DNA of 64,000 nucleotides from Geosiphon pyriformis uo1 (taxonomy: Eukaryota > Fungi > Glomeromycota), in NCBI GenBank assembly GCA_016748015.1, contig JAAOMT010000436.1, forward strand, positions 687,940-751,939. Direction: 5' to 3'. Shown here in pieces: positions 4,555 to 23,008 of the stretch. The notes under the pieces were generated by a model. It saw only the letters and a list, made by a program, of their open reading frames with translations, did not search any database and was not told where the DNA came from. How positions within the stretch are numbered: the stretch's first letter is position 1; every line of letters starts with the position of its first letter. The translations under genes and the position numbers were made by a program.

Positions 4555-7500
4555 ATGGGTAATTACTCATATTTGCCATAGCAATTAGAAGAACACTTTG
4601 CAGTACACAACAGAAACGACTTGGATTTCATTGAACTTAATTCTCTGCCCTCCTGCTTGATCTGTTTTCCCATTGAAGAACAATCCAGCAGACAATTCCA
4701 AGACTTTTAGAACTGGTTCCTGAATGAGCATTCAGCTGAAACCTACACAGCCTACACAATCTATTACTTTGACCAAGCTTACTTTGAAAACAACTTTGAA
4801 GAAAAAAACAACAATATTAATCAGCTCTTATACTCAGCAACCTTTGAACAACAACCTTCTGAATTCGAATATCTAAATCACCAAATTCACATCTGGATTA
4901 CTGCCCATCAATTAGCTGAAACCTCTTTTGAAACAGAAAAAGAAAGTTACCAAACCACTCTTATTTTTGATTTCTTCCCAAGTGATTCAGATCATTCCAC
5001 TCAAACAGTAACTCCTGAACCAATGGTCTAAGATCCAATGCAAGCAAACATTTTAGCCGCCCTCCAAGGCATACAAACTGCTTTGGGGCAAAGAAACAAC
5101 ATCCCATTACCATTATTTAGAGGTGATACACAAGATCTAATTGAATGGTTGGACAATTTTGAAAGAGCAACCATTGCCAACTAATATGATAATGAGTACA
5201 AGTTCCAAATTGTTGGTGGCTACCTTCAAGGCTCTCCTGCCACATGGTTTTCACAAGAAACCAATGCCAATGTCCAGCACAGAATTATCAAATAGATACC
5301 AGCAGATGCAGAAGAAAACAATACCTCTTTCACTACCCAGTTTGAAAACAAGTTCAGAACCCCAATCTTAATATCTAAATGGTGCATGGAACTGGAAAAA
5401 AGAACCCAAAGTCCTGATGAAGTTGTAACCAAATATGCCAAAGCAAACAGAAAGTTAATCAAGTAAGTAGACTCTGGAAGAAACTGGACAGAAGAACAAA
5501 AGATTTACTCCTTTACAAAAGGATTGAAAACTAACTTATCTTATGCTCTTTGGCCTTTCTTGGCTCTAAAAAACAACTCTACAATGGATATGGCTATTGA
5601 ACTCACCCAAAGGATTGAAAATAACCAAAAGATGCATCTGGGATCCACACTTCCAGTTTTTGCTCCTGCTCCTGTCATGGCCCCTGCTCCTCAAGTAGCT
5701 GCTACTTTTTTTGCTGCCCAAACCCAAGACCCAAATGAACAATTGATAGATAGACTCACAGCTAATTTTGTCTGGTTATTAGAACCATTGGCACAAGCAG
5801 TCAGAGATAATTAGCAATCTCCCTATCAAAGACAGCAAAATCATGGCCCACCTGTGTGCTATTGTTGTGGATTAACTGGATATTATTCAAGAGATTATAA
5901 CAATCCTCCACTGCCTTCTTCAGCTCCCAGAAACAATAACAACCAAAACAACAGACCCAACAACAACAACAATGTCCCCAATCAAAGACCTAATCATGCC
6001 AACATCAATTTTTTTGGAGAGGATCTCCTAGTTGAAGTTGCTGTTTATCAGCCTTTAAACTAGTAGGCACATTTCCAAAAAGTGAGAGTACAAGCCAACC
6101 AGAAAAAAACTCCTTTTATGCTTTTAACTTAACTGATAATGACTATAACATAGATGAACTAGCAATCAACACCTCAGAACCAACCAGAAAGAAGAAGAAA
6201 GCCAAGGTTGATTTCGTTCTAGACCCCAACAAAGCCTCAACTTCTGCCGCTGATAACAATGAGCCACCAAAGGCTAAAGTTTTTAAGAATTCTCCAAAGT
6301 TGGAATCCCCAGAAATTGTACAAAAATCTGGACCCTATTCCATTGTTAAAGATATCATGGAAACCTCAGCACATATTACCTTTGGCCAGTTAATAACCCA
6401 CCCACAGTTTAGAAAGGATTTTCACAAATCCTTGATTCCAAAAAAGAAGACACCAAAAACCAACAAGCGTCCTCACCAAGCTGAACTTGCTGACAATAGC
6501 AATGTTATCCCTCTGATTTGTAAAGCCCAAGTGGCTGAATACTTCATTGACTTAATTCTAGACAGTGAATCATCTGTTAGTGTTATTGCCAAACACTTTT
6601 TGGAAGCAATTGGTAAAAGGATTGATAAACTTTCCACTAGACCAATAACCAACATACATGATGACAAAAAGAAAGGACTGGGTATTGCCAAAGCTGTTTC
6701 TGTCCACATCAATGGAATCAGTATTGAAACTGACATGGAAGTTTCTGAAGCCAAGGAATACACCATCATTGTTGGCAATGAATGGTTCAAGAAAACAAAA
6801 GCTTTACTTGATTATGAACTTTGTGAATTAACCATCAGATATGGTGAGAAACCCATTGTGGTTAAGTGTTGCCATTGAACAACTTTCCCAGTACCCAAAC
6901 AAAACCAAGAAGAAGAACAATCAGATAAATCAGATGATGAAGAGAGCAATGAAGAAAAAGAACAAGAAGAGCAAGAAGAAACTACTAAACTCGCCTATAC
7001 TACCTTCACCAGCAATGGCAAACCACTGAACAATGTTAAAGCAGACAAAGAAGAAATCATTGTAAATGGCAAGCTGATCTGCTGGCTTTATTATGATATT
7101 CTTAAAAGAACTTTTGAAAGAAAACCTGGCAAGAAAGCCAAATACAGTTTTTGGTAGTATGGTCCTTGTGCCCAGTGTTGGTGCAACAAACTCTTGTATT
7201 CTCCAAGCAATGAATGCAAATCATGTCTGATCTATTACAAAGATTGGGAACCAATCAGTTTGATACCCAGAGAAGAATTGAAAGAAGTACAGAAGTCCTT
7301 TGAGAATGAACCACCTGAGATCCAATCACTGGTTGTAGAACAAAAAAAACCTTCTCCAGAAGAAAGAAAAATAGACATTGAAAATTTGCTGGCTAGAAAT
7401 AGCCCAGTTATTTCCAAAAAAGATGATACCCCTGGATGTACCCATGTAATACAACACACCATCACCACCAGAGAAACTCAACTCATCCATTTGAAGCCTT

Positions 7501-8747
7501 ATCAATCCAATCAGCACAATGATGAGTTTATCAAGAAAGAGATAAACTGGATGAAAAAACTTGAATTCATACAAGAAACCAAGAGTGAATGGGCTTTCCC
7601 AGTTGTAGTGATATCCAAGAAAGGTGGAACACTATGCTTCTGTGTCAACTACTGCCAATTAAATGCCATTACTGAAAGAGACATGTACCCACTTTCCAAG
7701 ATTGATGCAATATTAGATCAATTCAAAGATGCTGCTTTCTTTTCAATTATTGACTTAACTGCTGGATTCTGGCAAGTAGAGATGGATCCAGAAAGCAGAA
7801 AGAAAACTGCCTTCATTATCAAGTATGGCACCTATGAATTCACAGTCATGCCTTTTGGTCTTACCAATGCCCCTTCCACCTTTCAATGCTTAATGGATAA
7901 AGTATTTGAATCAGTCAAGGAAAACTTTGTTCTAGTCTATTTGAACGACATAATGGTATACTCAAAAACCTGGAATGAACATCTGGAACATTTACAAAAG
8001 GTTTTTGACCTCTTCAGAAATGCTGGCCTCAAAATCAACCCAATCAAATCTTTCTTTAGAAGACAATCCACCCAGTTTCTTGGTTATCTTATCACAAAAG
8101 ATGGAATTTTTTCTGACCCAGCCAAAGTTAAAAAAGTCCAAAACATCAAACAACCAATAAACATTTATGAACTATGTTTTTTTCTTGGTTTGGCCTCTTA
8201 TTATCGCAAATTTGTCAAGAATTTTTCCAAAATTGCCTTTCCTCTCAATCAGCTATTCAAGAAAAATGTCAATTACCATTGGAGAACACATTAGCAAAAA
8301 GCCTTTGAAACTTTAAAGAAAAAACTGGTTACAGAACCCATTCTCAAGCAATCTAATCTAGATTGACTCTTTATTCTTCACACTGATGCATCTGGCTTTG
8401 AACTTGGTGCTGTTTTCTCTCAGAAAAATGAAGATGGCAAAGAACATGCCATAGTCTATGTCAGTAGAACTCTTTCTCCAGCAGAACAGAACTATTCAGT
8501 CACTGAACAAGAATGCTTAGCAGTAGTATGGTCCACCAGTTACTGGAGTAAGTATTTTCTTGGTGTGAAGTTTTTGGTGGTAACAGATCACCAAGCTTTG
8601 GTTTGGCTGTGCAACAAAAAGAGGCTAGAACACAAACAGATAACTCGCTGGATACTCCACTTGGATAAATTTGACTATGATATTTAACATTGCAAAGGAG
8701 CTAATCATCAAAATGCCAATGCTCTCTCCAGACTTACTATCCAGTAA
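4555..8747 (+). pseudogene. Gypsy-1 gag (capsid, CCHC knuckle) and pol (protease, Zn finger, RT, RNase H), disrupted
   Basis: CYCCGLTGY knuckle (~5857), protease LILDSES (~6552), RT motifs FCVNY, MPFGLTNAPSTFQ and VYLNDIMV, RNase H LHTDASG...NANALSRL* (stop 8745-8747). Frame change at TTTAAAC-TAG (6054-6063). Confidence 0.88.
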
Positions 8748-8814
8748 CAGAACAATTCTCTTAAACCAAACCAACTTAATTATTAGTAATTTCCCTTTTT
8801 TGACAAACACGATA

Positions 8815-10128
8815 ATGGACTTGGACAACTATTCTGTCTTAATGGAATTTTTGGGTAAAGGACAATACTTACCAAAATACACATAACAACAAAGAGAACA
8901 TTTGCACAAACAATCAAATTTCTATTTAATTTGCTAGAACCAACTTTATAAAAAAAATAGAAAAGATTCTGATCATCCTCAGAGAGTCATCAGATTTGAA
9001 GAAAGAGAAATTGTGATCTACAATATGTATACTGATCTATTAGCTGGACACTTTGGAAAAACAAAAACAATTCAGAAAACTCTAGCTTGCTATTATTGGC
9101 CTACCTTGGGAAAAAACATTGCTGAATACATTAAAACCTGTGATATCTGCCAAAGAAGAGGAAAACCCAATCACAAAGAAGATATTCATCCAATCTTTGT
9201 TGGTCAACCCTTTGACAGAATTGGTATAGATGTTGTTAAACCTTTAACAATAACTCCTGATGGCAACAGATATATTATCACAGCTACTGACTATCTTACA
9301 AAGTGGGTAGAAGCAAGAACCACTCCAGACCAAACAGCAGTTTCAATAGCCAATTTCATTTATGAAGATATCATTTGTTGTCATGACTGCTCCAAAGAAC
9401 TTTTATCTGACAGAGGAAGAGCTTTTCTCAGTACACTTGTTGAAGAACTTTGCAGAAAAATGGGAATACATTACAAACTTTCCTCTTCTTATCACTCCCA
9501 AACAAATGGCCTAGTAGAACATTTCAATAGAACACTATGTAAAACCCTAGCCAAAACCAGCAAAGAAACAAACTTATGGGACAAAGTACTGCCTTCAGCT
9601 TTGTTTGCTTATAGAACTGTAAATCATGACATAACAAGTTATGAACCCTTTTATTTACTCTATGGACAAATGGCAACCCTACTAATAAAAACTGACATTG
9701 AGACAATACTCTTTGAAGAAATAACAATAGAAAATTACAAAGACATTTTGCAAAGAAGACTTGGTATTATTCTTGACTCATTAGTAGAAGCACAAATAAT
9801 TGTCTTTGAAAAGATAAAACCATTCTAAGAGAAGCTTAAAAAAAAGAAAACATATAAAACACTTTCCTTAAGTGTTGGCAACTTAGTTTTAGAATACCGT
9901 TCAGACAGAGACAATGTCTATGGTAATAAATTCTTTAACTGGTAGAAAGGACCCTTTATAGTCAACAAAGTTTTAAACAATAGTTTTTATATTTTACAAG
10001 ATCAATATGGAACAATCTTCAATAATTGCCTTGTTCATGACACATGACTCAAGAAATATCACAAATGACCTGATTGGTTATTTGTTGTGGTAATACTGAC
10101 CCAAATGATCAACAAAAATCAGATATAA
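8815..10128 (+). pseudogene. Gypsy-1 integrase (separate ORF)
   Basis: ATG 8815. Zn-finger AGHFG...CDICQR, DDE core GIDVV / LSDRG / NGLVEHFN, and a GPF motif. No chromodomain seen. Confidence 0.88.
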
Positions 10129-10169
10129 ATAAATGCATCATTTTCAAAACAGAGATATCTTCAATCGAT

Positions 10170-10790
10170 ATAAACAATTATTTCCTAGATCAAAACATTC
10201 AAAACATTTTCTACACTCTTCATGAGCACTAGATCAAAAATTATCCAAATGCTACTCTGATCATTGGAAAACAAACCATCATAACTGATAACAGTGGAAC
10301 ACATACTGTTATTAGACCAAAGAAAACCACTACCAGAAGAGAAAAAATTAGCAAAATAGATAAGTATTTGCTGGAAAACATAACAGTAACAATACTTACA
10401 CCTTCTATGACAATTGAAAAAATGATTAAGAAAATCTTGCCCATAGACAAAAACTTGTCATATGAAAGACAACTAGAACTCTATGGTTGTCTTGGTAAAA
10501 TCATAGAAGAAATGAAGCTCATGAAGAAAACAACTTCAAAGATACAAGTGGAAATTTTGGGCATTATACATTTAGATATCCCAAGAGTTTTGACTATTAC
10601 AAGAAGAGCCAAAACTTTTATACAAAGATTTGGTCTCTTGGATACAAAGCTTATTTTGTCTCAAGTACTATACACTCTATTCACAAAAGACTTCAACAAA
10701 TTAGTTAGTTTTAAGTTAGACAAAACCCTTCAATTAAAATACTCTATAAATAGCTTGATTTTGCCGGAGCTTAATCTCTTTGGAGAGAAT
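10170..10790 (+). pseudogene. Gypsy-1 accessory ORF3, unknown function
   Basis: Long nearly open frame between IN and the PPT (includes most of ORF 10368-10823). TATAAATA at 10124-10131. Start codon probably decayed (ATA at 10170); boundaries inferred. Confidence 0.55.
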
Positions 10791-10792
10791 GA

Positions 10793-11533
10793 TGTTATGG
10801 TTGAAACTCATAATTTTTATTAGTTATCACATGTATTAGCCACTAATGTCATATAATTAGCCACTCTATTTTTAGATAGTAATCATTGATCTAATCAATG
10901 ATCTGACCATTGACCTAATCATTGACCTGATTATTGACTTAATCAATAATCTGATCATTGACCTGATCATTGACCTGATCATTGACTTAGTTGTTGACCT
11001 GGTCATTGACCACTTTCAATAACTATATAAGCGATGAGTCTCTTAGTTATAGAAAATCATCTCTTAGACAAGAATCAAATAAATAAAAATAACAACTTTT
11101 ATCTTAATCACTCTCTTATTGCTAATTTCTCTTTCTCTACCTTCAAGTATCCGAACATTTTAGGATAAAAAATTACTTGTTGGTCTTTTCCTGTTTGAAT
11201 AATTGTAGTATTTGAAAACTATTTGTATAAACATAACTGAAGAGCACAAGTTGATACCTGATATTTGAATTCTAAGAGTGCTGATGTGAAGGCATAGAAT
11301 TAATACCAGTGGTGATTAATTGTTAACAGTACAGACTATCCCTCTACTTTCAGATTCCCCAGTTATCTTTGAAAAAAATAGCGACTAAGATATTTTATGA
11401 GACTGATCTTGCACATTGAATCTATACTTATTCAATTCACTCTTTAAAGTTGAATTCCTCTTTGATTATTTCCATCACTCTATAATCCTGTTCTTCCTTG
11501 CTATCTGTTAGCTTGTTACTCCAACCTGTAACA
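10793..11533 (+). repeat. Gypsy-1 3' LTR (741 bp) with 12-bp tandem array; PPT at 10782-10792
   Basis: TGTTATGG...TGTAACA, preceded by GGAGAGAATGA. About 11 copies of TCATTGACCTGA at ~10880-11010. Confidence 0.92.
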
Positions 11534-13957: not shown

Positions 13958-16900
13958 ATGGACCAAGACCAACTCAAAGAAACACTCCTAGCTGTCGTTC
14001 GAAACGCGTGTCTCGCTTTGGGTGAGTTTTCACTACTCTTCCCATATCCATTAGCCATTTTTCGGTCAACGCTAATTAACTTTTTGCTCATTTAAAGGTG
14101 GCAACGAAAAATCCAAAGAAAACAGCTCAGAAGAATTTTGCTATCAAATGGGTGTTGATTGTTTGGGTTAGTCTATAATAGCCCAGTCCAAATTTAACTT
14201 TTAAGCGATTACATTTTCCGGAATTATCACTGCTTTTCTTTTTAAACCCACAAACACTATTAGCTTCTTTAAGAGATATTACCAATTACATTGAATTGGA
14301 CAAAGATCTTGTAGTTTCTGAGCTTTCAAATCTTACCCTCGAAAAAGATCTGATTTCGATTCTAGAGTTAAACAAGGAAATGAAAAATAAAGTTGAACAA
14401 AATTATATTTACATCTGCGGTATAACTCTTTTACATTTTTTGAATCAAGAAGTTCCCTATTGCCTTATTTTCTAATCTCAATTCACTCACAAATTAGTCG
14501 ACTTAATCACACTAATCACTAATTCCTGCGAGAAAATCACTTCAGAAGATCTGGAAGATTGTGAACTCCTGCAGAGGAAAACACAGCAACAAGCATGCCA
14601 CGAAGCACAAATCAAATTCAAACAGACATTTATTTCATATACTTTGCCGCTGGAGATGGTGCTTCGTGTTGCATGCCAATACTTGGCAATCAATAAACTG
14701 TAGGTGATATCTCTCAATTTATTGGCTTTGAGAAGCTTTACAATATGCCGCATAAGATTTTTCTTTATGATTCAAATATATTATTTTCTTATTAAATCAC
14801 TAGGAAAAATACACAAAAAGAAATCGATAATGCGCGTAATAGTATTCAATGTTGCCTAAATTTCTTTCGAAATTTAGCTGCAATTGAAGAATCCACTTCG
14901 CTCCAAGATAATACATCTAAGCATCAGGTTCTAACAATAAAAAATTCAAACATATTGGAAGAAATAGCAAATTAACAAATCAATTTTCTTTCCAGAGTAA
15001 ATTAATTGAGTTATATAAAGAAAAACAAATATTTCGTCTTCTCATCGATCTTGCTTCTGATAACCGAAAAGTACGGGATTGGCATATCGTTATACTGGAA
15101 ATATTCTATCATCTTTTTAGTGGTATCAACCCTCAAGATCTATTTTCGGATGCCTCCACAAAGGTACAAAAGAGTTATAACCAAAATTTTTGGCGGTCAC
15201 CCATATGATAACACTTTGTTTTAGGGACCAATATCTCATTCCGAGATGAAGATTAAAGAAAGGACACAGAAGATTCATATAGGCAGGCACGGTCATTGGG
15301 GTGGGACACATAGCATGAAATTGGGCGTGAGTCAAAAATTTTTGCATTTGATTCCAAAATATTCTCAAACAAATTGGCTTTTCATATTTAATAGAAAGAC
15401 AGCTATTTCACAGTACATGGACAAACACCATCTCAGATGCCGGGTCCACAATTACCTGATATGGGTAAAAAGAAGTGGCAAAAGACCAAAATAATGGTAA
15501 ATATTCATAGAGAAACATGATAGTGTTATTGAACTAATCCAATGTTTATCTATTATAGGATGATTATGATAAAAGAAAAATGCTTACCTCCTCTGCGCTT
15601 CAATGTCTTAAAACAGTTGCCTCCGAATTTTTGGAATCTTGTGGATTTTCCAGTGAATAAGATTCTTATTTGAACATATAGTTTTTTTAAATTTAAAATA
15701 TCTGACAAAAATTTGCCAACACAGATTTAGTCTCGGAAGGAAAAAAGGCAATAGAATATGATAAGATGATTCCACAGCATCATAAATACTTTCTATATGT
15801 CGTAAGATTTTTCCTGGAAACTCACTTACTACTTTCAAAGGAACAACAAAAAAAGCAAAATTTACCTAGTGATCTTGACGCGTGTTCATATTTGGATGTC
15901 GTTTTGAAATCAAGCATTATGGAGTTGAGAGGATTTATTTTTATGCTTAAAAAAATGAGAGAATATCAGGAAGCAAAGGTGAGTTTTTAATGTTTATTAA
16001 TCTTTAATCAAAATATTTAAAAAGAGAATTTCACTCGTGTCTTTATTTTAAAAGTCATGGACGGAGTTGCACTTTTCGATCGAATGCTTCCATCAAATGG
16101 TAAATTTGACAAGGCCGTTGATAAATTGAAGTTATCTTATTTGAAAACATTTTTTATTAACCACGAATCATTTCACACAAAGCTAAATGTAGTGAAGGAA
16201 ATCGCTGAATCACCCTACGAAGATTATAATCAGCTAGCAGCCGAATTGCTCACACAAATTTTTTATGAGCAGTCTACATTTGACATGATTCTCAATTTTA
16301 TTCGGGATTACAAGACACAGTCCCTTGGGTAGGCATCCCTTAACTGTAATTGTGAATTTAACTACTATTTAAATTCTTCCTAAACCCATTCGTTTTCTCG
16401 TAGATTCCTGAATAGCCTCGTTAAAATGATTGATCTATTCATTTCTTTGCTTGAAGATTATGCAAGTCAGAGAAAGAATATGAAGATTAACAGAAAGGTA
16501 TCAAAGGGAAAAAAGAAAAGTCAGTATACAAACTTTCAAAAATTTTATTATTTCCCAAAATTAACTCACTCAAAGTTAATTCTATAAAATTACATTGTCT
16601 CGTGGCTTAGACAAGAAAGACGCGAACAGCGACTCGGAGAACGATCAAGAAGAGATAGAGGATCAAATCCAAGAAAAAAAAAATCAAGATTTGGAAAACT
16701 CCGAACGAATATTTCAATTTGAATCCTTTCAGCAAGTAATTACCTAGGCTGACTTGTTCTTCTAAGCTTAAAAGAGCGATCAAGAATAACAATAATGCCA
16801 AATTTTTAGCGGTTTGCGAGTGAGAAGATCGTCGAAATTTACTGCATCCTCTTGGAGACATATCAAGAGCTTGAGTGCCATTCTATCCAACATATTGTTA

Positions 16901-19900
16901 ACATGTTTAATCGAATAGCAATAAAGTGTAGGGGTGGCATAGGAGCATTTTTTAAGGTGAGTTTATTTCTATTGGTTTGAAGAAGATCGCGTTAACTAAT
17001 ACGGTTTGGTTTTACCACAAGTAGCTTTCAACATTGGAACTTTTTCATCGTATTCTCGGGGATCTTTCGAAAAACTCTGCTACAGAAGCTCATCTTAACC
17101 TTAAACAGTTTATTCAATTATGTGTAAGAGAGTTCTTGAAATTTGCGAAATTAGATCCTCTCCTATTGGCTAGTGTAAGTCGATAATCTTTTGACCAACT
17201 AGAAAGGAGTTAAATTATTATTATGTTCAAATTTCCTAACTAATTTTGTCGGGACAATAGATTCTTTTACCCAAAAAGTCTTCAGATTTTTTTTATAGCT
17301 CACAAGATATTGACAAAAAGGAGAAAGGGTACCATATAATTCAAACTGTCAAAAGTGATTAAAGGTATTTTCAATTAATTTGTTTTTTAACTTAGGAAGA
17401 AACCTCAGGAGCTTAAAGTAAGGCGTAAATTTGTATGGGAGGAACAAGTCCGTATTGTGGTGACTGCCCTCTTTGAGGATGAGAAAAAGGAATACTTGTT
17501 TTTCGTTGAACAGGTTAGGACCCTTTATAATTGCTTGTTGCAGACCAGTTAGTTATTCACATATCCACACTGACTACCCCTGCTTTTCTGTTTATAACAG
17601 GTGATTCATGCCTTTAAAAAAGATAGAAAGAAAATAGAGAAAAAATGGATCGACAATGAGAAAGATCCCAAATTTCATGAACGTAAGTTCCTTTTCCATG
17701 ATTGGCTTCTCCCTCATAATTAGCACTCACAATTAAATCAACAACCAATCCAACTTTTTGATAGTAATCTTGGATTGCAATGAAAAAATCATACAGACAA
17801 TCGAGAATGAAAAAATGCGATTACTTCTCAATTTACTGCAACTCAGCACTTATTATATAGGTATATGACGAGATACAAGTTATAGCTTCTACACAATGGT
17901 GCTTTTTTGTAACATTTCTTCATAAATAACTGTTATATCAGGAAAAGATGGAAAAGACGAAAAGAAAATTGGCATCCAACTCGATAAATCAGTTGATGTT
18001 GAACGTTTGAGAGATTATCAACGCATTATAAAGGAAACCATTGAAAAGCCTTTCAATCCTGAAGGACGTCCAGCCAAGGAGTATTTATATAAAAAACGTT
18101 CGATTAAGCCTAAGTCAAAGGCTCAAAATGCTGAAAAGCCTGACGAACAGATAAATAAGCATGAGAATGAAAAAAAACAAGAGAAATTAAACCAAGACTC
18201 GGAACACGATGATAAGTCTCAAGAAAGGCAAGAAGTGCAGCAGGAGTTGAATGCTGAACATACAATACTCATGAGCAAAGCAGGCGATGTTGAGTTGAAT
18301 ACAGCTGATACAGAATTCCCAGAAAAAGAACGGCAAGAAATGGAAAGTGAGGGGAATGATGATGACGCAACACTTATCAATGAAGTCGAAGAGATTCAAT
18401 TGAATACTCCGGAAATGAAGTCCCCAGTGGAAACTCAAGAGGCGCAACTGAAATTTAATCGTGATGATATTATACACATGAACGAAACTGGGTGTGAATT
18501 AAATATACCTAATATAGAACATTCAAGCTGCATTCAAGGTCCAGTTTTGGGTGCTAATCCTGCAAACCTATCACGTATTCATCGCGTGCCAATTTGGGAA
18601 TCTTATCGACAACAAAAGAAATCCGAGACTCGGGGGGATCTCCAATCACCTGCTGACTCAATTAAATTTGCTTTTAGTTCCAACAATTCGAATTCAGATG
18701 AAACCCATAGTGACATGTGCAAATCCAAAGAGTTCAAAACAAAAGACAGTTTTTTGGATGATATTGATTCCGATGAAAGAGAAGACTTCAGTGGGACACT
18801 AGAGTTTTCATTGGATGAAGATTATGATTCTGATTATAAGGAAAATGCTATTGAGACTTTAGATGGGTCTGAATTTGATGAAGGTTCTATCGATGTTCAA
18901 GCTCGTTATCTGGAAGATTCAGATGATATGGAAGATTTTGCAGTCGACGAAGACGAAGCAGAAGATGAAGAAGAGGAACCTGAGAGGGAAAACGAAAAGC
19001 AGTTGGAAAATTGCGAGGATTCTGATGTTGAAGAATCTGTGGATAGTACTAAGGAAGAACATCTCACGAGTATCACTTCATTAAATGAAGACATACAGAC
19101 GGAAAACAATTCAGAAAGAGATTTCGATCTCTCATCCCAAGACTCCAGGTTTGAAAATAAAGTAAAAAAATCTCTCTTTATCGAATATGAAGCGGTGGAG
19201 GAAGATGATGAATACATGGGCATGGGTGGAACAGATTGTGAAGACGATGAAGACGATGGAGAATCATTGGTTGATTTTATCACTAATGATAGACCCACAA
19301 CTCAAAATGAGTATACAACGGCGCGAAATTATTGGCAGTAAGTCTTCCAGGATAAGATCAGCCTCCATTTCAACCTTGAATCACTTTTCAATATTTTTTT
19401 CAAATTAAAAGAGAAAAAGAATTAGAGCAAGATCAAGCTGAAGTTACCGCTTTATACAAAGACATCACTACGGGTCGCCTTCGAAAAAGAACCCGTGGGG
19501 TGGAAGGGAGAATTTCTATAGATGATGATGATTCCTTTAAGCGAAAAAAGAAAAATAAAAAAATGGAGGATTCAGATGAAGAGAATTGTAAATATCTCTT
19601 AATATATATTAATTTCGAGCATCTAAAAAACTAGATAGTAATGTTATTTACCCCCAATCCCTTTGAATTATGGATAGATTCCGCCTTCATGCGAGCAGGC
19701 AAAGATGATATTAATTATGATGAAAGATTGGAGGACCTCAAATTTGGTGATATTACTTCATCACAGAATGACCAACAATCCAAAAATCAATCAATGGAAT
19801 TGTTCTGTGGCATCTTTGAAAATGAAGTGAACGATGAGTCTAGTAAACAGTATGAAAAATATGGTGGACATTTGAATACTTTTTCAAATAATGGCGAATC

Positions 19901-20541
19901 ATCCACATCGTGGGAATTTAATGAGGTTGTTCTTTCGTCTTTGGTTAGTAATTAAATTGATAACAAATTTTATTTTTGAGGATATAATCAGTTTCGCACA
20001 AAACTCACGTTAAATTTATTGCTTACATAGGCTGAAGAGGAAAAAATAGATGGTTTCGAAAAAGAGACCAATATTTTTTATTCTTGGGAGGCAAAATTTA
20101 AGGAAACGAATAAATTGAAGTCTTTTTCACCCGAGGTAAATGATTCACATAATTATACTGAAATTTACGCTGAATTTGTGTTATTCACAAAATTATTTAT
20201 TTTATACTAAAATATCATTAGAAGCGCAACTCTCTACTGGACATATCTCCCAGGAAACTTATTTCATTCTCAAATTTAGATGCCAAGGGTCGGCCTAATC
20301 TAGCAACTATGAAACCTGTTTTTCAGACAAAATTAAAACCAGCTTTACTAAAACCGAAAGCATTTTCTTCCGAACCACAGGCTAATCGAGTCGAAAAGGT
20401 AAGTTGAATCAATTTATCATCTTGACTGATTTATTACAAATCTCAAATATAACAAGATATTTCTAATCTTAGCAAAAACCTATAAAGCAAAAGAAAAAAG
20501 ATTACGAAGGAATGGAGAAGCTTAGGCAGGTTTTAGGCTAA
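13958..20541 (+). CDS. TOF1: Tof1/Swi1/Timeless homologue with a C-terminal MRC1 (Mrc1/Claspin-like) domain; ~26 exons, ~1,530 aa
   Basis: Hand-assembled GT-AG exons stay in phase: 13958-14021, 14098-14166, 14264-14419, 14498-14699 ... 17942-19337, 19412-19587, 19678-19925, 20031-20135, 20222-20398, 20473-20541 (TAA). Timeless-type motifs: NACLALG..YQMGVDCLASLRDI, FFRNLAAI, GRHGHWGGT, WTELHFSIECFHQM, QIFYEQ, ERIFQFESF, MFNRIA, WEEQVRIVVTAL, MRLLLNLL. MRC1 motifs: FIEYEAVEEDDEYMGMGG and VTALYKDITTGRLRKR. Confidence 0.85.
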
Positions 20542-20898: not shown

Positions 20899-22841
20899 TC
20901 AAAATAATTGTTTCTCGTAATTCACACCATCTCGCAGAAGAAATTTTAAGTTGTAATCATGGGGTAGGAAATTTAAGGAATGCCCGTGTCCCGTAAGATC
21001 AATTGCCTTGGGTCTGCCGGTCCTCAGATCAAGCTCTGGTTCAAATGAGAAGAATGCTAAAGTGTAGGCTGTGATAATTTGAATATCTCGAAGTGCCATT
21101 TCAGAGCCGGGACACCTTCGGCGACCCCGACTAAAGTTCTACACGTAATTGATGTAGTAAGTAATAAGACAACTTCAATTAAAGATTAAATTCTCAATTT
21201 GATAGCAGATTTATAAGTGGGTTCAAGGTGGCTTCAAAAAAAATAGGCATTTTTCAAATTGTAACTCACCCAAGGGTCGTAAGCATAATCAAAGTTTCTC
21301 AATTTACCATTTTCGTCGAGATATCGGTCAGGATTAAACTGGTCCGGGTTTTCATGTAATTTCGGGTTCATATGAATACCGTGAATATTCAGGACCACAA
21401 TACTACCAGCCTTGATCAGGTATCCACAGTAATTATCATCCTTCATCACTTGATGTGGAAGTGAGAAAAACGTCACCGGTCTTTTAAAATATAAGAGCAA
21501 ATGAAATATAAAAATGAAATATGGTTGTATCATATAATTTCAAGATTAAAAAATTCGCGGAATACTTGCCTATACCGTAAACTCTCTTTGACGGTAGCCT
21601 TCAAATAATGCAATTCGGACTCTTGCTCAATTTTCATAAAATTTCCTTTTCCCACCACATGATCTAATTCCGTCTGAATTTTGCGTTGCACCTCCGGATA
21701 CGTGGCCAATAATGCAAATAACCATTTTATTGATCCAATTGTGCTATGCGTGCCGGCGATAATTATATCATTGGATATGGTATTAATATCGAACCGATCA
21801 AAAACATAACTTCCTTCTTTATCCTTAATAAATTTGTGTGTAAAAGGGTCGGCCACAAGATTTTGATCCACTTTTACAGTGGTTAAAAGATGACCCACAA
21901 TACTTTGGTTACTTTCCACTCCATCCCTATCTAGATCTTTTTCAATCTGTGCTATCATCATGTCGAAAGATTCGTCGAGATCCTTACGTGTTTTTTTGGC
22001 TTGGTTTTCTAATCCGTTACCGATAATGGGAATGTAGCGGAGCCAAGGAAAGATTTCAAACGAATGACCTTTAGCTTCAATAAAGTCAAAGACTTGTTGA
22101 ATTGCTTTTTCATACAAGAGAAAAGCTGGACGGTTTTCTGGTGTTGTGACAATGCTGGGACCATAGATGATTGTCATGAAAATCGACATTATACAATGAG
22201 AAATTTGATCGACAGGGTTGAAGGGTGATTCAGAAAAATTGTGAATTCCTTTAAGGAAAATTTTCATTTGTTTATGGATAATAGGGTGGTAGGTGGTGTC
22301 AATGACACTTTGTCGAAATGCATTCGCCTCAAACATTCGCATGATTTTCCACCAGTCAGAGTACTAAGTTATCAAGATTTGAGATTGAGTCCATCAAAAA
22401 AATGAAATATCTCTTATGCTTACCGGGGCTAATGCAACGCTTTTACTTCCTCTCATAACAATCCGATTGAAAAGATAACTATCCTGCAGAAATTGAGTCA
22501 AATATGATTCATCCAATTTGAAACATTTTAATTACACATACCGGCCTCGAAGCATAAACCACTCCCCTATTCAAAAACAACTCCTTGCCAATCTCATGAT
22601 CATTCACCACGATCCATCGTTCCGCCCCCACCCTAACCTCGTAGATTGATCCATACTGATGCGCCAATTTCGTGAATCCAAGATGAAATGGAAAGCCAAT
22701 TTGGTGTAAATTGCCAATGATTGGTAATGGAATCGGAGAGGGAAGTGGTAAAGTGCCGTCAGGATGTTTTCTATTTCTCCTGAGAAAAAGAAAGTATAAA
22801 TAAACGGTGAAAAAGACGGCGAAAAGAATTAAGTTTAACAT
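20899..22841 (-). CDS. Microsomal cytochrome P450 (multi-exon)
   Basis: N-terminal membrane anchor MLNLILFAVFF, hinge PSPIPLPIIGNLHQ, I-helix AGTHST, K-helix ESLR, PDQFNPDRY, and heme motif FSRGRRRCPG (~21108-21137). ATG 22841, TGA 20899-20901. Confidence 0.93.
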
Positions 22842-23008
22842 TTTTGGATAAAAAATTTTTCTATATAATTTGACAAAAAAAAAGTGGGCAGTCGACATTG
22901 CAAATGTCGTCACATATCTGTATATAGAAATTAGTCACGCTGGCTATGGCTTGTTGCATAGTCCATAATTACACCAATTTTCACATCTTTCGAAAACCCA
23001 ATATATTC

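Follow-up and report, generated by a model that had tools for sequence, protein, structure and literature searches.

Tof1, Csm3, and Mrc1 (Timeless, Tipin, and Claspin) form the fork protection complex and are normally encoded by separate genes; Tof1-Csm3 and Mrc1 travel with the replicative helicase. Here we describe a locus of the glomeromycete fungus Geosiphon pyriformis uo1 at which one gene probably encodes a chain of about 1,551 residues, made up of a Tof1/Timeless body and the only Mrc1-like domain of the organism. The locus lies in a stretch of 64,000 nucleotides (assembly GCA_016748015.1, contig JAAOMT010000436.1, positions 687,940 to 751,939 of the forward strand), hereafter the window, and positions below are counted from its first letter.

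Several properties of the separate proteins bear on this arrangement. A fragment of yeast Tof1 comprising residues 1-830 suffices for fork pausing, for helicase-polymerase coupling, and for Csm3 binding (PMC7708041). Mrc1/CLASPIN of yeasts and humans runs in extended form along one side of the replisome, and its N-terminal sites dock on Tof1/TIMELESS and MCM; the sites of CLASPIN that dock on TIMELESS are CLASPIN residues 284-319 and 592-618 (PMC8634136). Close to Cdc45 and the N-terminal domain of Mcm2 lies the Mrc1-like domain, which in S. pombe, S. cerevisiae, and human binds H3-H4 tetramers (PMC11380579).

A covalent Tof1-Mrc1 tether at this locus had been proposed from the letters of the window alone (the original prediction), with the remark that no such case was known. 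Likewise, we found no report of a Tof1-Mrc1 or Timeless-Claspin fusion, natural or engineered, in the searchable literature, which is incomplete and thus no proof of novelty.

A continuous reading frame joins the two parts

The gene model comprises 26 exons with 4,656 coding bases (1,551 codons) on the plus strand, from an ATG at 13958 to a stop ending at 20541. Tracking the phase exon by exon, we found no stop in any of the 26 exons from the ATG through to the final stop, and all 25 introns (51 to 104 bases) are of the GT..AG type and phase-consistent. The genome is AT-rich, with a G+C content of about 0.30-0.45 in the exons, about 0.20-0.35 in the introns, and 0.15-0.31 in the flanks. Profile, similarity, and structure searches were made exon by exon, and scripts computed only the phases and the per-exon translations.

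The original prediction had spoken of about 20 in-phase exons ahead of one long exon. We counted 20 as well, provided that the 68-base exon at 17261-17328 is included, and it was included because the frame between exons 16 and 18 is otherwise closed by stops. A direct joint between these two exons (17174 to 17396) was tried and rejected, as the frame breaks at once with stops.

The long exon (exon 21) had been said to run without a stop into an MRC1 motif, and it does so. Its frame (17944-19337) contains 0 stops in 465 codons, while shuffled sequences lead one to expect about 34 (Poisson P of ~1.5e-15); the other frames contain 17 and 66 stops on the forward strand and 15-24 on the reverse strand. 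The portion at 17944-18686, to which no RNA maps, is itself free of stops where 17 would be expected (P of ~3e-8). Furthermore, the G+C content is 0.35-0.43 throughout exon 21, as in the other exons. It follows from the stop-free frame and the exon-like G+C that no intergenic stretch is hidden between the Tof1 and MRC1 parts. The peptides quoted in the original prediction were all found in place: IIKETIEKPFNPEGRPAKEYLYKKR near the start of the open stretch 17926-19338, SLFIEYEAVEEDDEYMGMGG from 19171, and EQDQAEVTALYKDITTGRLRKR in the next exon.

At the joint between exons 20 and 21, the G at 17860 and the GA at 17942-17943 make up a Gly codon, so that the frame is kept over intron 20. This ordinary 81-base intron is the sole noncoding DNA at the joint, which has no AT-rich gap of intergenic appearance, and it resembles the RNA-confirmed introns in length, ends, and G+C content. 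We infer the joint 17860>17942 from splice-site and phase logic alone. An alternative acceptor near 17885 for the donor at 17860 was rejected, since it would leave an intron of only about 25 bases.

In-frame ATG codons are absent from exons 17, 18, and 19 and from the first half of exon 20. Position 17815 carries the first, and after it the frame has no ATG until 18271, within exon 21. The codons that open exon 21 must thus be read by translation coming from upstream and not from a start of their own. Likewise, as the frame has no ATG between exon 17 and 17815, a separate gene cannot begin in the exons that precede 17815.

TIMELESS and MRC1 profiles match in order along the predicted chain

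The Pfam TIMELESS profile (PF04821) matched with its positions 162-229 at 14921-15205, scoring 45.5 bits (cut-off 25), and with its positions 126-163 at 14796-14972, scoring 21.6 bits; in a six-frame genome search the locus scored 42.2 bits. Profile positions 1-125 were not detected in the exon-by-exon scan. Among PDB sequences, the best match of exon 6 was Tof1 of Chaetomium thermophilum (6xwx_A), at a weak E of 0.022, and exons 10, 16, and 18 of the Tof1 body, as well as exon 22, had no match. The TIMELESS_C profile was not found at the locus, and its best match in the whole genome (E of 2.35) lies on another contig. This PARP1-binding domain is a feature of animal TIMELESS and is not known from fungal Tof1, and its absence thus does not exclude a Tof1.

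Sequence hallmarks of the MRC1 domain had been picked out by eye in the original prediction. The corresponding Pfam profile, PF09444, matched above its cut-off of 25 in both exons, with positions 2-51 at the end of exon 21 (28.3 bits, E of 2.9e-6) and positions 58-116 in exon 22 (38.4 bits, E of 2.2e-9). These matches fall in consecutive exons, follow one another in the order of the profile, and have no overlap; the six-frame genome search gave 32.8 bits for the first half and 35.1 bits for the second. In a phmmer search of PDB sequences, the first half aligned weakly with residues 716-753 of S. cerevisiae Mrc1 (8b9a/8xgc; E of 0.28). The ESM Atlas clusters nearest to exon 21 by protein-language-model features are MRC1-domain proteins, with scores of 0.86-0.87 that serve as a lead only. 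The MRC1 resemblance is a real profile match and more than a motif seen by eye. Of the three profiles that the original prediction had named, TIMELESS and MRC1 are matched above cut-off, exon by exon, and TIMELESS_C is without a match at the locus.

The locus holds the only copy of each domain

Six-frame searches were run over the whole assembly (128.3 Mb in 792 contigs). With the MRC1 profile, this locus alone matched, and the same was true of the TIMELESS profile; both MRC1 exon peptides found only themselves. The search for a separate MRC1 gene, which had been put forward as a check on the tether, thus returned none in the 128.3-Mb assembly. Because the genome contains no other MRC1 match, any Mrc1 of the organism must be this locus.

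The Swi3 domain (PF07962) gave only weak matches below the cut-off, with E values of 0.32 and 0.91, on other contigs. One of these two loci holds an open frame that is Swi3-like by eye. The two, weak as candidates, are the likely places of a separately encoded third fork-protection subunit, Csm3.

Both halves are transcribed and spliced

Transcript data were taken from the contigs of one public run (X1) that match the window at at least 99%. These contigs represent RNA, because they are spliced and skip 14 GT..AG introns, although the run's record does not name RNA as its source. Joint positions were assigned after shifting the cut within the permitted range. Five of the confirmed joints lie toward the start of the gene (14699>14804, seen as a loose end, 14927>14996, 15163>15225, 15326>15395, and 15496>15559), six follow (15652>15725, 15978>16055, 16099>16183, 16328>16404, 16519>16611, and 16735>16810), and the remaining three are 17513>17601, 17682>17765, and 19337>19412. 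The last of these comes from a 755-base contig made up of 18687-19337 and 19412-19515. Expression and splicing of the MRC1 domain thus agree with the model. Judging by the depth bins, the contig that spans exons 18-20 stops near 17826.

A further contig (depth 3.06) skips 133 bases within 16882-17016 with CT..AC ends, overlapping the plus-strand intron expected at 16957-17024. Such a joint is the mark of a minus-strand GT..AG intron and could represent an antisense spliced transcript or an alignment artifact.

An acidic, mostly disordered stretch precedes the MRC1 domain

Aspartate and glutamate make up 28% of exon 21. At its start, a helix is predicted at exon residues 19-34, together with a basic patch, and between this tail and the MRC1 domain lie about 350 residues that are predicted to be disordered and have no detectable relative. 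A single-sequence AlphaFold2 model of exon 21 is mostly disordered (mean predicted local distance difference test score of 44.6); its confidence is low, and it was used only for disorder. Over its 464 residues, exon 21 has four S/T-Q sites, which show no evident clustering.

The start of exon 21 had been described as a Tof1-like tail. The sequence is indeed present, but neither Pfam nor PDB sequences nor the ESM Atlas lent support to a homology with Tof1. The start of exon 21 may correspond to a C-terminal element of Tof1/Swi1 or to the Mrc1 N-terminal region; its position suits Tof1, given the length of the body ahead of it (809 residues, compared to the yeast 1-830 fragment; PMC7708041). The part attached to Tof1 may be the C-terminal region of Mrc1 only, as originally predicted, or a shortened whole Mrc1. 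PDB sequences were queried with the whole exon, its first 58 residues, and its middle, and the ESM Atlas with the first 70 residues, with blank or chance-level results throughout.

The minus strand at 18906-19298, opposite the acidic linker, carries a serine-rich open frame of 130 codons. Most likely this frame merely reflects the GAA/GAT richness of the coding strand and is not a gene.

Weighing one fused gene against other explanations

The locus has a continuous frame, both domain matches, a single copy of each, expression of both halves, and splicing of 14 introns. We consider it probable that these belong to one gene giving a single chain in which the Tof1/Timeless body is followed by the Mrc1-like domain. 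Of the proposed covalent tether, what stood was the fused frame in the DNA, its consistent phase across 25 introns, the single loci, and the MRC1 intron seen in RNA; the joint 17860>17942 lies outside the transcript cover. Several observations weigh against a single chain. The joints 17174>17261, 17328>17396, and 17860>17942 are predicted only, being neither confirmed nor contradicted by RNA. No X1 contig covers 17827-18686, and a hole in contig cover proves nothing. No homology of the tail and linker to Tof1 or Mrc1 was detected in Pfam, PDB sequences, or ESM Atlas features. Retention of intron 20 would give Gly-Ile-stop, with a TGA at 17866-17868 and thus a Tof1 of about 811 residues without Mrc1, and the two in-frame ATG codons could serve an internal promoter. 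Finally, no orthologue was found that would show the arrangement to be conserved, and the searches allow no statement on relatives either way. Exon 21 had no relatives among 1.84 billion representative proteins, nor were any found in two metagenome scans. Word-indexed protein searches with the whole of exon 21, with its last 132 residues, and with the exon 22 stretch were blank; only proteins of 0.55-1.75x the query length are visible to them, and because of this limit a fused relative of about 1,500 residues would be invisible to exon-sized queries.

In a rival arrangement, the DNA is shared and the proteins are separate. The Tof1 mRNA would end, or would keep intron 20, and a stand-alone Mrc1-like protein, begun at the ATG of 17815 or that of 18271, would come from a promoter inside the gene (in intron 19, in exon 20, or early in exon 21); little or none of the fused form would be made. 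The immediate stop after retention would make a tidy Tof1 end, near the length of the yeast 1-830 fragment (PMC7708041), both ATG codons are in frame, and RNA cover is interrupted at 17827-18686. However, that hole is one of contig cover and proves nothing, and in its length, its ends, and its G+C, intron 20 is no less canonical than the confirmed introns. The 109 codons of exon 21 ahead of its first ATG are open while the other frames carry many stops, which is hard to explain as a 5' leader. Even if the ATG at 17815 were used, it would fall within an exon that also belongs to Tof1 and that RNA shows joined to exons 18-19, and there is no room for a normal promoter. We consider two separate proteins unlikely.

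Two further explanations appear far less plausible still. The assembly is in 792 contigs, and a wrong join or a collapsed region might have placed an Mrc1 gene behind Tof1, or the locus might be a decaying pseudogene. A join made by chance would rarely leave 465 stop-free codons in phase behind a clean GT..AG intron, however, and transcript contigs match the window at at least 99% on either side of the joint. Moreover, both halves are expressed and correctly spliced, and the genome offers no second copy of either gene to be the real one, which makes an artifact very improbable. We give equally little credence to the idea that there is no Mrc1 part and that the MRC1 profile, itself acidic, has only picked up an acidic C-terminal tail of Tof1. 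The first half of the domain is indeed very acidic and only 3 bits above the cut-off, and phmmer against PDB sequences related it to yeast Mrc1 at the weak E value given above and found nothing for the second half. Yet this second half is neither acidic nor of low complexity and scores higher than the first, and it follows the first in profile order across an RNA-confirmed intron. The nearest ESM Atlas clusters, at the level of a lead, are those of MRC1-domain proteins, and the genome has no other MRC1 match.

Features of the locus and its neighborhood

The coordinates of the gene and its parts are collected in Table 1. The four terminal exons had no Pfam match in the profile scan and no cover by X1 contigs.

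Table 1. Features of the Tof1-Mrc1 locus (window positions) and candidate Csm3 loci elsewhere in the assembly
Feature	Position	Strand	Basis
Whole gene model	13958..20541	+	Phase bookkeeping; 14/25 introns seen as transcript-contig joints
Exons 1-20, Tof1/Timeless body, 809 codons	13958..17860	+	Pfam TIMELESS match; RNA joints for introns 4-14, 18, 19
Exons 5 and 6, match to Pfam TIMELESS positions 126-229	14796..15205	+	Profile search
Exon 16	17025..17174	+	Gene model
Exon 17, 68 bases, predicted only	17261..17328	+	Acceptor CAATAG, donor GTACCA; restores open frame; outside RNA cover
Intron 20, 81 bases, GTATAT..TATCAG	17861..17941	+	Splice sites and phase; outside RNA cover
Exon 21, 1,396 bases: short helical/basic start, long acidic disordered linker, first MRC1 half	17942..19337	+	Open frame; contig cover 18687-19337
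Tof1-like tail of the original prediction, includes IIKETIEKPFNPEGRPAKEYLYKKR	17942..18117	+	Sequence present; predicted helix and basic patch
MRC1-like domain, first half (PF09444 positions 2-51)	19159..19308	+	Pfam profile
Intron 21, inside MRC1 domain	19338..19411	+	RNA joint 19337>19412, GT..AG
Exon 22, MRC1-like domain, second half (PF09444 positions 58-116)	19412..19587	+	Pfam profile
Exons 23-26, C-terminal tail, predicted only (19639-19943, 20031-20135, 20222-20398, 20473-20541)	19639..20541	+	Longest open GT..AG exon chain
Weak Swi3/Csm3-domain matches	G000:C659:91343-91438; G000:C640:193884-194003		PF07962, sub-cut-off

Upstream of the gene, at 6300-10823, lies a Ty3/gypsy-type long terminal repeat retrotransposon whose open frames carry domains of a retroviral aspartyl protease (RVP_2), a reverse transcriptase (RVT_1, 110 bits), and an integrase (Integrase_H2C2 and rve). 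Downstream, a cytochrome P450 gene on the minus strand (21234-22913) converges on the 3' end of the Tof1-Mrc1 gene at a distance of about 700 bases; against Pfam p450, its exons score 113 and 33 bits, and the longest exon encodes 270 residues.

How a tethered Mrc1-like domain might work

In a single chain, the N-terminal ~809 residues would form the alpha-helical Tof1/Timeless body at the front of the CMG helicase, probably paired with a separately encoded Csm3, for which the weak Swi3-domain loci are candidates. The following ~400 residues, mostly disordered and strongly acidic, would act as a flexible linker, long enough for the attached Mrc1-like domain to take up its customary position near Cdc45 and the N-terminal domain of Mcm2. 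The covalent link may replace or back up the noncovalent docking of the Mrc1/CLASPIN N-terminal region on Tof1/TIMELESS, and could make that region partly dispensable; the shorter region ahead of the domain (~400 residues compared to ~700) would fit this. Additionally, a fusion would fix Tof1 and Mrc1 at a one-to-one ratio and couple their turnover.

Extending this, we tentatively suggest that in this fungus, an early-branching relative of the arbuscular mycorrhizal fungi, and perhaps in a wider clade, free Mrc1 is gone and is made only as a C-terminal arm of Tof1, with the tether in place of the Mrc1 N-terminal docking region. The fork protection complex might then be a two-gene machine with a fixed one-to-one ratio and shared turnover. 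This is a possibility that we hold with clearly less confidence than the fusion itself.

Significance and comparison with known systems

The finding is a new arrangement of two well-known partners, and we regard the fusion as probable rather than as established at the level of the transcript or the protein. How Mrc1 is retained on the replisome, and how much of its disordered N-terminal half serves only that end, is still under study. If true, such a natural fusion into one chain would demonstrate that simple tethering to Tof1 can bring the histone-binding Mrc1-like domain to its site of action, and would suggest which parts of Mrc1 are dispensable once the link is covalent. In budding yeast, Mrc1 is degraded during checkpoint recovery and Tof1 is not known to be; a fusion would raise the question of how recovery proceeds when the two cannot be handled separately. 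The finding would gain in weight if an entire fungal clade turned out to have Mrc1 in this form alone.

The first part of the chain is close to Tof1/Swi1/TIMELESS. It has an N-terminal TIMELESS match, a body of about 809 residues that approaches the length of the yeast 1-830 fragment, a single copy in the genome, and a separate, weak Csm3/Swi3 candidate. However, known Tof1 proteins end in a disordered tail of their own, which in yeast binds Top1 (residues 997-1182), whereas the Geosiphon tail runs into an MRC1-like domain.

The second part resembles Mrc1/CLASPIN in having a Pfam MRC1-like domain in acidic, disordered surroundings. Unlike Mrc1/CLASPIN, it is not a stand-alone gene, as the stretch from the Tof1 body to the MRC1 domain contains no stop, no start of its own, and no intergenic DNA. 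Moreover, about 400 residues precede the domain here, compared to about 700 in the yeasts, and no counterpart of the N-terminal docking sites for Tof1/TIMELESS is recognizable; the linker has no relative among PDB sequences. For the N-terminal docking region of Mrc1, conservation is low and Pfam offers no model.

Overall, the locus follows the pattern of the Rosetta-stone fusions, in which two complex partners of other organisms are encoded as one chain, a pattern that is a classic basis for inferring interaction. Since Tof1 and Mrc1 are already known partners, the fusion reveals no new interaction, and its value is that of a natural experiment and a design hint rather than of a new kind of system.

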